Below, in pieces: positions 11,240 to 44,138 of a DNA stretch of 64,000 nucleotides. The translations under genes were made by a program, and so were the position numbers. The notes under the pieces were generated by a model. It worked only from the letters and a program-made list of their open reading frames with translations, made no database searches and was not told where the DNA came from. Positions within the stretch are counted from its first letter, which is position 1, and each line of letters starts with the position of its first letter. Source of the DNA: Lepidodermella squamata (taxonomy: Eukaryota; Animalia; Gastrotricha); contig JBLDXI010000015.1 of NCBI GenBank assembly GCA_047495785.1, forward strand, positions 3,224,001 through 3,288,000. The letters are read 5' to 3'.

Positions 11240-11820
11240 GATATTTATTTTTATTTGCGAAGAACTCTTTCATTTCTTCGTTTTTTATTTTTGATGCTTC
11301 TTAATTTTATCTTGTTGTAAATTTAGAGTCTAAATAAAAAAACAGCGTTCGATCGGCCCTTTTTTCGTGTGTTTGTGGAAAAAACTTGACAAATCGCGTG
11401 CCTCGCCTCGTGCAATGATCGTTTTAGCTTTTATAAAATGTGAAAAGCTATCGCCAGTTTTTTTTATTTTCAAATGCTAGCATTGACAATCTTGAAGCTT
11501 GCTTTTCTCATACAGTCTTTCATTGTAGGCATAAAATAGGAAATGCAAGGCGCGATGAGGTGATGCAAGGCTAATGTTGTTGAATCGTGATTTGGACTTT
11601 GTACAATTTACAATTTTTCTCAGATTTTTTATTCTATCGGTGTTTATCTGCTCAAGGCGCGAAACGGAATAAATTGTACATAAACCTCGCCAGTTTTCCG
11701 ATTCTCCTTAGATATCTAAGCGCTCGCGCTCGTGTTGCGTCAGTATTAGAGCGTGATTCATTAGCACCGTGGGGTGGAGCTTAACAGCGCGTGCCAAACA
11801 GGGTCGGCCTGGTATAGTGC

Positions 11821-11836
11821 ATAGGCAAATTAGCGA
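11821..11836 (+). promoter_or_regulatory. Putative snRNA proximal element at -73 of U2
   Basis: ATAGGCAAATTAGCGA, matching ATATGCAAATGAGCGA at exactly -73 of the U2 at 43944. ATATGCA.AT also sits at about -74 in other copies. Confidence 0.5.
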
Positions 11837-11893
11837 CCCGGCTGGTTGTGCGCGCAGTCCAGAACGGCGCCAAAAATTTTTTTCAAAAAAAGT

Positions 11894-11968
11894 ATCGCTT
11901 CTCGGCCTTTTTGGCTATGATCAAAGTGTAGTATCGCTTCTCGGCCTTTTTGGCTATGATCAAAGTGT
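11894..11968 (+). ncRNA. U2: 5' part of interrupted U2 snRNA gene: U2 nt 1-39 followed by a second copy of U2 nt 1-36
   Basis: ATCGCTTCTCGGCCTTTTTGGCTATGATCAAAGTGT occurs twice, as a perfect 39-bp tandem at 11891-11929 and 11930-11968. Confidence 0.95.
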
Positions 11969-12193
11969 TTTAACGCAAAGTTCGGATTATTCTGATATTG
12001 CTTCATTTGATTTGATAAAAGTAGCACTGCTAGCACTCCTCTTACTATTCGCTGCCTTATCAAGCCCTCTCTCCTGAGATCGCGAGATAGGCTTCTTATA
12101 GTATAGGCGTAGGCTATTAGTGTTTTCTCACCGAGGTTTAGCGTACTACGCTTCGTCCGAGTAACTCAGGGTTTGGGCATTCCCTTTCCCTGC

Positions 12194-14320
12194 ATGAAAA
12201 GCGAAGCCAGTATGTCTGGACTTCATAGGGGCATAGTAGTTTGTTCCACCGAGATGAGCTCCGACTCTGATCGGTCTGCCCGCTCAGCGGGCAAGGTCAA
12301 GCCTTGCGATTGCAAGCAAGTCCATCGGACGGCCACTGCTTCGCGAGGAGTCCCCGAAGCCCTTGGTTGGATCCTTGAAGGACCCCAAGTTGGCAGAGCG
12401 ATGCTCCCCTGTCCGGCTCCGGCTGGAGATCCTCGTTGTTCGACGGCCTATGGCCCGAATAACGAGCACCAGCCTTTAGCAAGGATAGAGGCTATGGGAG
12501 TAGTTCCAGCTGTCGGAGATCCTCGCAATCTTGAGCTAAAAGCTCAGAGGGCTGAGAACCGACAAGGCGACCCACCGGAGGCGCTTGGCGTGTTGCATCA
12601 GGTTCTTCGCCTACGAGGTGGAGGCAATCCTACTTCTGGTAAAACCCAGAGGGGGAATGCTACGGCCACGGGTGGCGCCAAAAGGCAGGCGAAAACTAAC
12701 TCGCAGCCTGGCGGTATCACCCAGACCGTACCGATGTCACAACTGAGCGATGACGAAGGTGAGGAGGAACTGCCCCACAAGTCGGCCCGTAACAAAGCTG
12801 GCCCGTCGCCTCGTATTCCTCTGAAGGAGCTTGAGGCAGATCTCAACCTGTCTGAGGATGACGACGATGACGATGCCGACATGGATGTGGACAAGGAGGA
12901 TGCAGCAGGTCAGGATCAAGGTTTCACGAAGGTGGAGTCGAAGAAGAAGAAACAACGACGGAACAAGAAGTCTGGTGAGAGGAAGAAGGAAGATGCTGCT
13001 AAGATTGTTATGATCGATCGGATCCCGTTGTCTTTTGGCAAGCCGACCGAAAAAGCCGTGTTGAAGGAGGTTGATCGCATCGCACCGGGAGCTGTGATCA
13101 AGAGCTTTAGCACGCTTCAGCGCGGCGGGCTGATGCTGGTCTGCGGTTCTGCTTTCTCGGCGGAGTCGATCAAGCGCTCGACTTACTGGGGGCTCAACTC
13201 GAAGCCTGCCTTTGGAGGCGCTGTCTGCCATGCTCCGTCAGGAAAGGTTTTCGACGAGAAGGGAAGGGCCGTCGACAATGTGATAATTGTTGAGAAGCAT
13301 AAGCTGATTACCGACTCTCTGTCGAGCGATTGGACCGCAGAAGAAATCCTCGAGTACATGAAGGACTACGGCGTCAAGCGAGTTGTCAAGTTGAGCAGTA
13401 AGCGACCCAGGCACTTTCCAGTGCTGATGGAATTCGAGTCGGAGGAACGAGCAACCTTCGTCAAGGAGTTTGAGGGCGGTTTCACGTTCTGCGGCAAGCT
13501 TCTGAACTTTAGGCATCCGAAAACCCACAAGGGCCCGGTCATTTGCAATCGCTGCCAGTGTATCGGCCACCCAGCCACCCGGTGCGACAATGAGTTACGC
13601 TGTGCTGACTGTGCTCAAGCTGGCCATTCGCGTGGGGCGCCGGAGTGCCCGAAGAAGGAGGATCCAGTCAAGGTTTGCTCGCTGTGCGACAATACAGTCA
13701 GGCCGCACCCCTCTGGCCATCGTTCATGCCCGGTCTTCAAGAAGAAGAGGCAGGAGATGTACGAGACGAGGAAAGCCGAACTTCAGCAGCAGCAGCAGAA
13801 GCAGAAGCAGTCGAAGTTGAGCGAGTCCACAAAGAAGCGAGTCGAGGATAATTCTTCGAAGCAGCAGGTGTCGTCGTCATCGTCATCGAAGACAGGACCT
13901 GAGCTGCAGGCTCGTGGACAGGAGGGCTCGCAGGCCTCTGGCCAAAACCGTCCACTTGGTGCCGATTTTGTCAAGTCGCCGTCGAAATCGCAGAAGAAGA
14001 ACATGAAGCGTCGTCAGAAGAAGCTCGAAGCAGCCAAGCAGGATCAAGCCGCAGCTGAAGGTCAAGGTCAAGGTTCGCGACCGGTGACAACAGCCGATTT
14101 GTACGCGTTTCTCGGCAAGATGGCGGCCTGCATGACAACCATGCTGGAACAAGCCCGGCAAGCTGGGAAGAATGCGAATATGGCTGTGCTAGTTAACGCC
14201 ACTATTACGAACCTTTTCGTGTCGAGCTTTCCCGGCATAGCAGAGTCCTTGGAAGCAGCCAACCCGGCTCGCCCTGCTCCGAAGTTCACCCGAAATAAGA
14301 ATTCGAATGATCTTAGGTGA
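12194..14320 (+). CDS. Retrotransposon ORF1 (gag-like nucleic-acid chaperone)
   Basis: Three knuckles: CNRCQCIGHPATRC, CADCAQAGHSRGAPEC, CSLCDNTVRPHPSGHRSCP. Also an RRM-like segment and a GFTKVESKKKK basic patch. First in-frame ATG at 12194 (frame open from 12173). Confidence 0.92.
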   Translation: MKSEASMSGLHRGIVVCSTEMSSDSDRSARSAGKVKPCDCKQVHRTATASRGVPEALGWILEGPQVGRAMLPCPAPAGDPRCSTAYGPNNEHQPLARIEAMGVVPAVGDPRNLELKAQRAENRQGDPPEALGVLHQVLRLRGGGNPTSGKTQRGNATATGGAKRQAKTNSQPGGITQTVPMSQLSDDEGEEELPHKSARNKAGPSPRIPLKELEADLNLSEDDDDDDADMDVDKEDAAGQDQGFTKVESKKKKQRRNKKSGERKKEDAAKIVMIDRIPLSFGKPTEKAVLKEVDRIAPGAVIKSFSTLQRGGLMLVCGSAFSAESIKRSTYWGLNSKPAFGGAVCHAPSGKVFDEKGRAVDNVIIVEKHKLITDSLSSDWTAEEILEYMKDYGVKRVVKLSSKRPRHFPVLMEFESEERATFVKEFEGGFTFCGKLLNFRHPKTHKGPVICNRCQCIGHPATRCDNELRCADCAQAGHSRGAPECPKKEDPVKVCSLCDNTVRPHPSGHRSCPVFKKKRQEMYETRKAELQQQQQKQKQSKLSESTKKRVEDNSSKQQVSSSSSSKTGPELQARGQEGSQASGQNRPLGADFVKSPSKSQKKNMKRRQKKLEAAKQDQAAAEGQGQGSRPVTTADLYAFLGKMAACMTTMLEQARQAGKNANMAVLVNATITNLFVSSFPGIAESLEAANPARPAPKFTRNKNSNDLR

Positions 14321-17084
14321 ATGGAATATCAGGAGCCTGTCAGGTAAGCCGCATGAGTTCAACACAGTAGTCTCTGACTTCAGATTTGACTGTTTATTTT
14401 TGTGCGAAACTTTGCGAAAATCAAATTCGAAAATCGCTGTTCCGGCTGGCTACGAGCTTGTTCCGCACGACAGGATCGACGAGGACGGGAGAGAAGCTGA
14501 AGGTGGTGGGATCGCGTGGCTGGTGAAGAAGAATCTGCGGGTGTGCGACATCCGGCGGTCTCGGCCTGGTGCATTCGTCGAGTATCTGGCAATCAAGCTG
14601 GAGAAGCAGGACGGATCTGGCTTCTGGCTAGTAGGTGTCTACATCCCTGATGGAAAGCGTCTGTGGGACCCGGACTTCTTGCTTACGTTTGCCGCTGAGT
14701 GCCCTACCGTGGTCTGTGGCGATTTCAATTCGCGTCATGGCGAGTTTGGCGTACGGCAAGGAGCTTCGGTAAACGCGTCTGGTCGGCTCATGGTCGAATT
14801 CTTAGCGCGTAGTCCGTACTCACTTCTTGGCGATAAGCGGGCCACTCATTTGCGTGGTAGCAGACTGGATCTCTGGTTTTGCTCGGCTGACCTGGCAGGA
14901 TATTTTAGCTCGTACCGTGTCGGAGGCTTGTATAATAGTGACCACAATGTCACGTCGATTAATTTCGACATACAGGCCTCGTGGCGCGCGTACCCTCCGG
15001 TTCGGCCTTGCTATAATAGAACCAATTTTTGCTTGTTCCAATCTATTCTAGAGGAAGGCCTTGGGGAAATCAAGATCCCCGAGGTCTCGACTCCAGACGA
15101 AGTCAAGCGGTATGGCGGCGAGATTTCTACGGCGATCTGCAAAGCTAGGGATGAGGCGGTTGTTCTTGTACCGGCTGGCAAGGTCCCCGGCTATCGTGCG
15201 ACGCCTGCCATGCGGCTGGCCATTTCCAATCGTCACCGGTACCTGCGTTTGTACAAGAAGACTGGTCGGCCGATTTATCAGCACTTGGCGAATCAAGCAT
15301 ACAACCGTTTCAAGCGGCTAGGCAAGGAAGCAGATGAGTTGGCGAAGACGAGGAAGATGAAGAGATTGGAGCAAAATCGGCGGGTCAACCTTCGACAGTT
15401 CTTTGCTCTTCTGAAACAAGTGTCGAGTGGCGAAGGTGCGTCGCAAGCCCCTGCAGTTCAACCGCTCAAGAACGCGCAGTCTGGTCAAGTGATCGTTTCG
15501 GACGTCGAGAAAGCTGAGCTGCTTGGCGAGCATATGGCAAAGGCAGTTCGGGCTCCTGAGTCTGAAGAAGTGTGTGAAGAATATCGGCATCACCATCGGG
15601 CAGTTTCCCTGTTCGTAGCCGAGCATCCTGAGGTTTTTCGGCCCCTTCCGACGGCCCCAATGGAAACGAGGATCAAGGTCTCTCGTGGCGAGTTTAGGGC
15701 GGCGATTCGACGGCTGAAGCTGAAGGCTCCGGGTCACGACGAGATCAGCAACTTGTTACTGAAGCGCGGTGGCTCAGTCCTCTGGAATCATCTTCGACGC
15801 TTGTTCAACATGAGTTTGGCGTGCGGCTTTGTACCAGAAGATTGGAAGTTAGCTATCATCGTACCCTTGCCAAGGCAGGGTAAGGATTTGGCGTCTCCGG
15901 GCGGTTACCGGCCGGTCTCTCTACTACCGACGATGGCGAAGCTGTTGGAGCTGATCCTTGCAAGACGGCTGCGGGATCTCTTCGAGCAGCATGGTCTTCT
16001 GCCTCTCCACCAAAGCGGCTTTAGGCAGTTTCACTCGACGACCGACCAGACTTTCCGCTTGTCCCAGCTCGCGGCGATGTCTCGTTTGCGCAGGGAGGTC
16101 TTTATAGCGGCTCTTCTTGACTTCGAGGGCGCTTTCAACGCGGTGTGGCATGACGGGCTACGCAAGAAGCTCTACGATTGTCCGGTCATCGATCGAGGAT
16201 TGGTTCGCTGGCTTTCGTCGTACCTCGAAGGGCGATCCTTTGTCGTCCGGGTGGGTGACTCTTTCAGTCCTACAAAGTTCAGCATCGGCTCGGGCGTGCC
16301 GCAAGGCTCTGCCCTGAGTCCAATACTCTTTGCTTTCTTCACAGCAGATCTGTATCCGGATGACGCTGGCCTTGGTACCGCCTCTGCTGCTACTTACGCT
16401 GACGACGTTTTGGTCTGCGAAGCGGCGTGTTGGGCTGGTCTGGCGACGGCGAGAGTGCAAGCTGCACTACGGCAGATCGAGCGCTGGAGTCGGCTGTGGC
16501 GTCTTCCTCTCAACCCGTTGAAATGTCAGGTGATGGCGTTCAACACGAATGAAGTCCCTGATCTCCGTATTGGCGGTCAACAGTTGCCTGTTGTGAAATC
16601 AGCTACGTACCTCGGCATCTTATTCGACAGTAATCAGACCTTCAAACTGCATTTCGACAAAATCGTCAAAGACGCTCGGTCTCGAATTGCTGGATTGGCC
16701 TCGATCTGTTATCCGGGATCGCCCGTGTCCTTCGAGACGCGGAAGTTGGTTTACGTAACGACGGTCAGACCGATCCTTGAGTACGCCTGTGCGACTTTTC
16801 TGCACGTCTCGGCCAAGCAGTTTCGTCGGCTTGAGGTTCTTCAGAACTGGGCACTACGCCTCATTCTCGGAATCGACCCGCGTGAACACCTGAATGGTGC
16901 TGAGCTCTGTCGCCGTGCTGGTTTACCGCTGCTCCGTGAACGGATGGTCCAACTCGCTGGTAACTTCGGCAACCGTGCGCTAATACATGTCCGACCTGTC
17001 GCTGATGTTATCCGAAAGGATATATCGTGCGAAGCGGTGGCTGGTACGCCTTTGGGCGCGTTTAAGCATCTGTTGTTTATTTAA
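14307..17084 (+). CDS. Retrotransposon ORF2: apurinic-like endonuclease + reverse transcriptase, 925 aa
   Basis: APE motifs EWNIRSL, LCET, GGGIA, GDFNSRH, SRLDL, SDHN. RT motifs KAPGHD, YRPVSLL, QSGFR, AFNAVWHDGL, GVPQGSALSP, YADD, YLG. No RNase H, no C-terminal CCHC, no RLE. Confidence 0.97.
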   Translation: MILGEWNIRSLSGKPHEFNTVVSDFRFDCLFLCETLRKSNSKIAVPAGYELVPHDRIDEDGREAEGGGIAWLVKKNLRVCDIRRSRPGAFVEYLAIKLEKQDGSGFWLVGVYIPDGKRLWDPDFLLTFAAECPTVVCGDFNSRHGEFGVRQGASVNASGRLMVEFLARSPYSLLGDKRATHLRGSRLDLWFCSADLAGYFSSYRVGGLYNSDHNVTSINFDIQASWRAYPPVRPCYNRTNFCLFQSILEEGLGEIKIPEVSTPDEVKRYGGEISTAICKARDEAVVLVPAGKVPGYRATPAMRLAISNRHRYLRLYKKTGRPIYQHLANQAYNRFKRLGKEADELAKTRKMKRLEQNRRVNLRQFFALLKQVSSGEGASQAPAVQPLKNAQSGQVIVSDVEKAELLGEHMAKAVRAPESEEVCEEYRHHHRAVSLFVAEHPEVFRPLPTAPMETRIKVSRGEFRAAIRRLKLKAPGHDEISNLLLKRGGSVLWNHLRRLFNMSLACGFVPEDWKLAIIVPLPRQGKDLASPGGYRPVSLLPTMAKLLELILARRLRDLFEQHGLLPLHQSGFRQFHSTTDQTFRLSQLAAMSRLRREVFIAALLDFEGAFNAVWHDGLRKKLYDCPVIDRGLVRWLSSYLEGRSFVVRVGDSFSPTKFSIGSGVPQGSALSPILFAFFTADLYPDDAGLGTASAATYADDVLVCEAACWAGLATARVQAALRQIERWSRLWRLPLNPLKCQVMAFNTNEVPDLRIGGQQLPVVKSATYLGILFDSNQTFKLHFDKIVKDARSRIAGLASICYPGSPVSFETRKLVYVTTVRPILEYACATFLHVSAKQFRRLEVLQNWALRLILGIDPREHLNGAELCRRAGLPLLRERMVQLAGNFGNRALIHVRPVADVIRKDISCEAVAGTPLGAFKHLLFI

Positions 17085-17411
17085 TCTTTGTAAATATTTC
17101 CGTCTCGATCTCGGTGGTATAGTGTAAATATAGTGTAAATACTTTTTAACTAGCTTCGGCTACGCAGCTCCTTGCTATTGTTGTCCAGAATCTTGCGCGT
17201 GTCTTTATTTTTATAACAGAATAAGATTAAGAGGAGAACGACTTATGACCAGCGATATGCGCAATGCATTTTGTTGACTTCTACAGTCTTGTTAATTGCC
17301 TCAGCTTTGATACATTTATGTCTCATTTCTGTTTTGTTGTTGAAAGCAGACAGAGGGCTATAAGATTTGATATCATGAAGTCCTTCGCCAAATAAAATAA
17401 CCCGCGTTGGC

Positions 17412-17576
17412 AAGTGTAGTATCTGTTCTTTGTAGTTTAATATCTACAACGGCCTCCATGTGGGGCCTACGATATTAGCCCTATTTTTGGCTTGCCGGGC
17501 GGGAGCAGCCAGCTTGCTGGACCCCGTCCACGAGTCGGCCCGGTATTGCAGTACCTCCGGGATTCGGCTCACCCCC
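17412..17576 (+). ncRNA. U2: 3' part (nt 31-195) of the interrupted U2 snRNA gene
   Basis: AAGTGTAGTATCTGTTCTT, Sm site ATTTTTG, loop IV TATTGCAGTAC. One substitution (17493) versus the intact copies. Confidence 0.95.
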
Positions 17577-17723
17577 TGAAACACGGGGGAATGAAACCTA
17601 AAAACAAATATCTAGGATCTAGTCTGAAGGCTCTAGTGATAGTCTCCTGTGTCTTGAAACATTTTATCTCATCGCCTGAATTGGAAGGAAAAATCAATAA
17701 AATATTGATAAAATCAGGAAAAA

Positions 17724-17796
17724 TGGAGGATACGGGCGTCGATCCCGTTACCTCTCGCATGCTAAGCGAGCGCTCTACCATTTGAGCTAATCCCCC
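17724..17796 (-). tRNA. tRNA-Ala(AGC)
   Basis: GGGGGATTAGCTCAAATGGTAGAGCGCTCGCTTAGCATGCGAGAGGTAACGGGATCGACGCCCGTATCCTCCA followed by a T5 terminator. Confidence 0.97.
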
Positions 17797-43943: not shown

Positions 43944-44138
43944 ATCGCTTCTCGGCCTTTTTGGCTATGATCAAAGTGTAGTATCTGTTCTTTGTAGTTT
44001 AATATCTACAACGGCCTCCATGTGGGGCCTACGATATTAGCCCTATTTTTGGCTAGCCGGGCGGGAGCAGCCAGCTTGCTGGACCCCGTCCACGAGTCGG
44101 CCCGGTCTTGCAGTACCTCCGGGATTCGGCTCACCCCC
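43944..44138 (+). ncRNA. U2: U2 snRNA (loop IV variant, alternative upstream region)
   Basis: Full-length, with A>C at 44107. Confidence 0.95.

Follow-up and report, generated by a model that had tools for sequence, protein, structure and literature searches.

The window, by which we mean the whole 64,000-nucleotide stretch of Lepidodermella squamata DNA that was analysed, contains a loose array of U2 snRNA genes, with 10 intact genes within 40183-61900 and one cut by the window end. A further U2 gene, located ~22 kb upstream of this array, is interrupted by a non-LTR retrotransposon (LINE) that is preceded by a second copy of the U2 5′ sequence. Spacing across the array (40183-64000) is irregular, at 1.5-4.8 kb, and a minus-strand tRNA-Ala(AGC) gene lies ~147 nt downstream of 6 of the 13 U2 units, counting intact, interrupted and window-cut ones. 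A 412-aa ORF with C2H2 zinc fingers (53422-54660, plus strand), which is either a host gene or a piece of another mobile element, is found in the widest spacer of the array, flanked by the U2 genes at 50410 and 55188. The features of the interrupted locus are as follows.

11814..11893, plus strand: promoter-proximal part of the interrupted U2 gene (minority type), with ...AAAAAGT at its end
11819-11836, plus strand: PSE/octamer-like GCATAGGCAAATTAGCGA, with an equal motif at equal distance in all U2 units
11894..11932, plus strand: outer U2 copy, nt 1-39 (direct reading, probe, TRF)
11930..11935, plus strand: AGTATC at the joint, either U2 nt 37-42 or nt 37-39 plus nt 1-3 (direct reading)
11933..11968, plus strand: inner U2 copy, nt 1-36, starting exactly at U2 +1 (direct reading, probe, TRF; parallels in metagenome contigs L010-L014)
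11969..17411 (maybe to 17414), plus strand: 5.4-kb non-LTR retrotransposon in U2-sense orientation, sole copy in the window
12194..14320 (first ATG; open frame from 12173), plus strand: ORF1, intact, with three CCHC-type zinc knuckles
14307..17084, plus strand: ORF2, intact, 925 aa, with apurinic-like endonuclease (aa 6-215) and reverse transcriptase (aa 531-771)
17391..17396, plus strand: AATAAA, 15 nt from the element 3′ end
17412..17577, plus strand: U2 nt 31-end, then the usual downstream box, 98% identical to array units from nt 31
17724..17796, minus strand: tRNA-Ala(AGC), placed as in intact U2 units

The U2 promoters of the window fall into two types, one ending ...CATTTT before +1 and a minority type ending ...AAGT. 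Only two of the 13 U2 starts, at 11894 and 43944, have AGT at positions -3 to -1, and by contig depth AGT-type promoters belong to roughly 5% of U2 genes, which is a rough figure. We also asked whether the AGT-type upstream region could be an old, decayed U2 leader; this was rejected, its alignment to U2 being no better than those of shuffled sequences (p ~0.7).

The LINE and its insertion site

The two intact ORFs of the LINE overlap. ORF1 gave no match in Pfam. ORF2 ends ~150 aa past the reverse transcriptase (RT) domain, contains neither an RNase H nor a restriction-like endonuclease (RLE), and showed a weak match to L1 ORF2p in the PDB (E 1e-10). A search of the window for further copies of the LINE found none, and its DNA copy has no poly(A) run. 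U2 sequence is present on both flanks of the LINE and on one strand, which places the insertion in a multicopy RNA gene and in the orientation of that gene. This is best explained by a site-specific element of the apurinic-like endonuclease (APE) type that resides in U2 snRNA genes, where it sits at nt 31-36 in the sense direction.

On the 3′ side, U2 sequence resumes at 17412 with AAGTGTAGTATCTG..., i.e. from nt 31 onward, and not at 17415. The 3′ end of the LINE is ambiguous between 17411 and 17414, because a short-read contig of another copy also has AAG at this point and diverges after 17414; the minimal target site duplication (TSD) is therefore AAGTGT or TGT. The tRNA-Ala(AGC) gene sits at its usual place, so that the 3′ flank of the interrupted gene represents an ordinary U2 unit.

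One public sequencing run, X1, covers the locus in the form of k=31 contigs, which we compared with 11650-17640. Contig depth in this run was ~187-208 over the LINE versus 88-118 over the promoter flank, which suggests that the LINE is present in a few copies. The contig path forks immediately past 17414, with one of the branches entering non-U2 sequence: here the LINE 3′ end, ...GTTGGCAAG, continues into GGCTTCTATTTCGAGCC.... Either at least one copy or 3′ fragment of the LINE lies in a non-U2 context, or the flank has been rearranged. Compared with the window, the X1 contigs also have one additional A after 11971 (TTTAA(A)CGC) and four substitutions in the promoter flank (11715-11806), which reflect either variation between strains or alleles or minor errors of assembly. 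One contig shows an E to D difference at 16940.

Relatives of ORF2 with 40-68% identity were found in metagenome and Logan contigs (L001-L009). None of them has U2 at its ends, and they are therefore uninformative on the U2 junction; no tRNA was found in their flanks either. In two of these contigs (L007 and L009), AATAAA is followed by a poly(A) tail, and the flanks past the poly(A) have GGTTAGAGTGC...GCGCTCT in common, a motif that corresponds to neither a tRNA nor an Rfam family. The closest relative (L001/L002, 68% ORF2 identity) has a 3′ terminus similar to that of the U2-inserted LINE, followed by TATATATA, which is possibly a (TA)n target. As judged from these flanking sequences, there are hints that other members of the LINE group may have other specific targets.

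The duplicated U2 leader

Positions 11891-11968 constitute a perfect tandem repeat with a period of 39 bp (2.0 copies, 100% matches in TRF). Read directly, the interrupted locus runs from AGT (11891-11893) through U2 nt 1-39, U2 nt 1-36 and the LINE to U2 nt 31-end, which is the order given in the initial annotation and is borne out by probe and TRF; the sequence right after nt 36 of the inner copy, TTTAACGC..., is non-U2. A 24-nt probe for the U2 5′ end matched at 11894 and 11933 without mismatches, with 0 matches expected by chance. Because U2 +1 was set by Rfam U2 alignments of the 10 intact genes in the same window, the match at 11933 also confirms the earlier statement that the second copy starts exactly at U2 +1.

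Regarding the U2 sequence itself, the L. squamata RNA has ATG at nt 24-26 versus AAG in most U2. A U2-led transcript would open with a 5-codon upstream ORF, ATG ATC AAA GTG TTT TAA, that crosses the U2/element junction (11956-11976).

In the standard geometry of target-primed reverse transcription, staggered nicks duplicate only sequence downstream of the bottom-strand nick. U2 nt 1-30 lie upstream of a nick at nt 30/31, and the inner copy therefore needs a second template. Candidates for this template are a donor RNA starting at U2 +1, free U2 snRNA, another U2 gene (as DNA), and a duplication that was present before the insertion.

We favour the donor RNA, with a probability of roughly 55%. 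In this model, the inner U2 1-36 would be the copied leader of an RNA begun at U2 +1 of a donor that resided in a U2 gene, and the cDNA would have been end-joined at ATC. The outer copy is then read as the 5′ part of the target gene itself, up to a top-strand break at nt 39-42, and the inner copy as the leader of the retrotransposed RNA. We infer the transcript, the order of nicks and the mode of end-joining as follows. A donor copy would be transcribed from the start site of its host U2 gene, yielding an RNA composed of U2(1-36) and the element. In a new U2 gene, the bottom-strand nick would fall at nt 30/31, or as far along as 33/34, and target-primed reverse transcription would run to the extreme 5′ end of the leader-bearing RNA. 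Usually, the cDNA would anneal to the target via its U2 leader and leave one clean junction; in the present case, ATC (U2 +1 to +3, which equals U2 40-42) would have served to join the cDNA end to the top strand, itself broken at nt 39-42. The product would be target U2 1-39, RNA-derived U2 1-36, element and U2 31-end, and it would follow logically that the true TSD is 9-12 bp.

Two observations speak for a copied RNA leader. No ribozyme family matched the 5′ end of the LINE at E values up to 5, so that nothing known would trim such a leader; and one X1 contig joins U2 nt 16-36 to the same LINE start, reading TTTAAACGC with the one extra A. Conversely, the AATAAA near the LINE 3′ end, together with the poly(A) tails of relatives, points to mRNA-type 3′ end formation, which counts against transcription from the U2 promoter, since snRNA-type promoters support 3′ end formation of this type poorly. 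A single read-through event from U2 would be enough to generate the window copy, and a promoter internal to the element would be compatible with it as well.

The initial annotation had offered local slippage as its alternative. For the window copy this is viable; we favour it less than a copied RNA leader and regard it as unlikely. A 39-bp duplication would have arisen between the AGTATC hexamers of a minority-type gene, and the LINE would later have entered the second, complete copy with an AAGTGT duplication. AGTATC recurs at 11891-11896 (-3 to +3 of the interrupted gene), 39 bp from the hexamer at the joint, and the microhomology usable at the joint is 6 nt (AGTATC) for slippage and 3 nt (ATC) for a cDNA copied from RNA. 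The repeat of exactly 2.0 units bounded by AGTATC agrees with slippage, and its strongest point is that AGT precedes +1 in just 2 of the 13 U2 starts, as slippage explains why the duplication occurred in such a gene. The AGT at -3 to -1 of the host gene, which makes the repeat exactly 2.0 units long, is a prerequisite for slippage and a coincidence under the RNA model. On the other side, slippage demands two independent rare events that abut in one gene, and the U2 5′ probe detected no 39-bp duplication in the other U2 genes of the window, including the AGT-type gene at 43944. Slippage after the insertion was rejected on the sequence, which offers no microhomology and would force one edge exactly onto the junction.

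There is a very small chance that the second 39-bp unit is an assembler or polishing error. The X1 contigs differ from the window beside the repeat, by the extra A and the four mismatches described above, and among the k=31 contigs listed for this run none bridges the 11932/11933 joint. It would be atypical, however, for an error to yield a flawless 39-bp unit whose first base is precisely one with biological meaning, and the same joint was assembled independently in five metagenome contigs.

Recurrence of the joint in metagenome contigs

Metagenome contigs were scanned with one pattern, a 21-mer across the joint that consists of GTGTAGT followed by ATCGCTTCTCGGCC. The five matching contigs represent three lineages with downstream sequences that are related neither to one another nor to the window LINE; viral contigs gave 0 matches to the pattern. 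In L010, three identical U2(1-38) units are followed by non-U2 sequence, and the first unit has GGC at -3 to -1. L011/L013 (93% identical over 3 kb) carry a diverged U2(4-39), U2(1-35) and then non-U2 sequence, and L012/L014 carry U2(21-37), U2(1-31) and an element with a C2H2 zinc-finger ORF. This ORF, which lacks an RT, is the only one found downstream of the joint, the other lineages having none; the three metagenome insertions therefore count as candidate retrotransposons. Extension of L012 in search of an RT recovered only the L012 contig itself.

One of these contigs contains nested U2 fragments (L014:600-2560, minus strand). Their order is an L007-like element 3′ tail (AATAAAATGTGG plus an A-run), a diverged U2 1-37, U2 nt 16-28 in inverted orientation, 1.6 kb containing a CCHC ORF1-like frame, U2 21-37, U2 1-31 and the zinc-finger element.

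The +1 start of the inner copy in these matches was fixed by the pattern and is not independent evidence. What the pattern left free is the other end of the inner copy, and in every metagenome lineage this copy ends abruptly within nt 31-40, where U2-targeting elements have their insertion hot spot; it never continues as intact U2. This break-off ties the duplication to insertion and argues against a one-off slippage. Slippage is further disfavoured by the recurrence of the joint beside insertions in three lineages in which AGT is absent at -3 to -1 or the outer copy is truncated; in L010, the GGC at -3 to -1 makes slippage between AGTATC hexamers impossible.

The ends of the inner copies bear equally on a template switch, in which RT, on reaching the 5′ end of a leaderless element RNA, would jump to mature U2 snRNA and copy it to the cap. 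LINE/snRNA chimeras made by template switching are known, as in the U6-L1 chimeras. The inner copy indeed begins at the snRNA 5′ end, it has been proposed that Tx1-type machinery adds U1/U2 pieces repeatedly at the 5′ end (PMC4494074), and two X1 contigs join U2 ...GTAGTATC (nt 42, a U2 ...AGTATC end) to unrelated AAGACTTCGTAGTTTTTTTGATAC.... We nevertheless consider a switch improbable. It would have had to land at nt 36, the exact insertion-site junction, where microhomology is at most 1 nt; and a jump onto free U2 snRNA would give full-length or scattered ends, whereas the inner copies of the three metagenome lineages all end at nt 31-40 and not at the U2 3′ end.

Copying at the DNA level is quite improbable in our view. 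In this scheme, a broken U2 gene would be repaired from an element-bearing U2 gene, with ...AGTATC priming on positions -3 to +3 of the donor (microhomology-primed gene conversion). An AGT-type donor would provide a 6-nt terminal match; U2 arrays undergo conversion, and the possibility has been raised for Utopia (PMC4640811). Yet U2 +1 is not special on DNA unless the donor is of the AGT type, and L010 with its GGC at -3 to -1 still shows the joint three times. Moreover, ATC is also found at U2 27-29, yet there is no matching shorter duplication at the window locus. The earlier proposal, an RNA template with its 5′ end at a donor's U2 cap site, is supported in part, and to its original basis the recurrence in three metagenome lineages and a likeness to R2 can now be added.

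Likeness to R2 and implications for U2-inserted elements

R2 RNA cleaves itself up to 36 nt upstream, within 28S, so that target sequence stays attached to the template (PMC3774820). R2 junctions are mostly uniform, with a minority that has tandem duplications of upstream 28S, sometimes repeated (PMC3774820; Eickbush, Burke and Eickbush 2013), and the duplicated stretch is as long as the interval between the RNA 5′ end and the junction (PMC3774820). The U2 LINE resembles R2 in being site-specific and inserted in sense orientation in a multicopy RNA gene, and R2 RNA carries upstream target sequence (PMC3774820). The 36-nt inner copy of the window spans U2 +1 to the junction, in agreement with the duplication-length rule of R2, and recurs in L010-L014. 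The two differ in the origin of the RNA 5′ end. That of R2 is made by an HDV-like ribozyme, which cuts a Pol I co-transcript 9-36 nt upstream (PMC3774820), whereas the U2 LINE has no detected ribozyme and its RNA end would coincide with the U2 transcription start. The U2 LINE also lacks the family features of R2, as it has two ORFs and an N-terminal APE instead of a single ORF with a C-terminal RLE. By analogy, the U2 junction appears to follow the logic of R2, with the U2 transcription start replacing the ribozyme cut.

Two groups of U2-targeting LINEs have been described, Keno of the Tx1 clade and Utopia, which encodes an RLE (PMC4640811). The window LINE shares with both its insertion region, a conserved 5′ stretch of U2 genes, and with Keno the APE endonuclease (PMC4640811). 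The 3′ flank of Keno and Utopia starts from U2 nt 39 in human numbering, corresponding to nt 41 here (PMC4640811), whereas that of the window LINE starts from nt 31-34 (AAGTGTAG), 7-10 nt upstream, so that the insertion site is not that of Keno. In Utopia the RLE lies downstream of the RT; the window LINE is without an RLE and has the N-terminal APE instead. Neither a duplicated U2 leader nor transcription from the U2 promoter was described in the report on these groups (PMC4640811).

For the U1 and U2 heads of crocodilian SINEU elements, template switching has been proposed (PMC4494074). Like the window copy, SINEU (PMC4494074) and the U6-L1 chimeras have an snRNA 5′ piece before retrotransposed sequence, possibly with repeated 5′ addition. 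These chimeras occur at sites other than snRNA genes and contain snRNA pieces of varying extent, whereas the inner copy of the window sits within a U2 gene and stops at the insertion site.

The literature on U2-inserted elements that we searched contained no account of this type of junction or of transcription from the U2 promoter, and did not address the expression of the rare U2-targeting retrotransposons. By the analogy drawn above, a duplicated target leader is a signature already known from R2, and its U2 snRNA-gene version would be what is new. From such a junction, the start of the template RNA may be read from DNA alone, and the joint U2 ...GTAGT followed by ATCGCTTC provides a search key for U2-inserted elements in unannotated data.

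We propose only tentatively, at somewhat less than even odds, that the snRNA-type Pol II promoter routinely drives transcription, from the U2 cap site onward, of U2-gene retrotransposons belonging to several unrelated lineages, among them the APE-type LINE and at least one zinc-finger element, which may be of the RLE type. If so, the stacked U2 leaders (three in L010) would be a genomic tally of successive rounds of retrotransposition, and the short U2 heads of some SINEs may derive from co-transcripts and not from template switching. An snRNA promoter could then also yield a translatable transcript of ~5.5 kb. The snRNA-type promoter is normally coupled to 3′-box processing of short RNAs, and the U2 LINE poses the question of whether it can make a long coding RNA with an AATAAA signal. 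The principle known from R2 would thereby be extended from rRNA genes, with a Pol I co-transcript and a ribozyme cut, to snRNA genes, in which the Pol II start of the host gene would set the end of the RNA.
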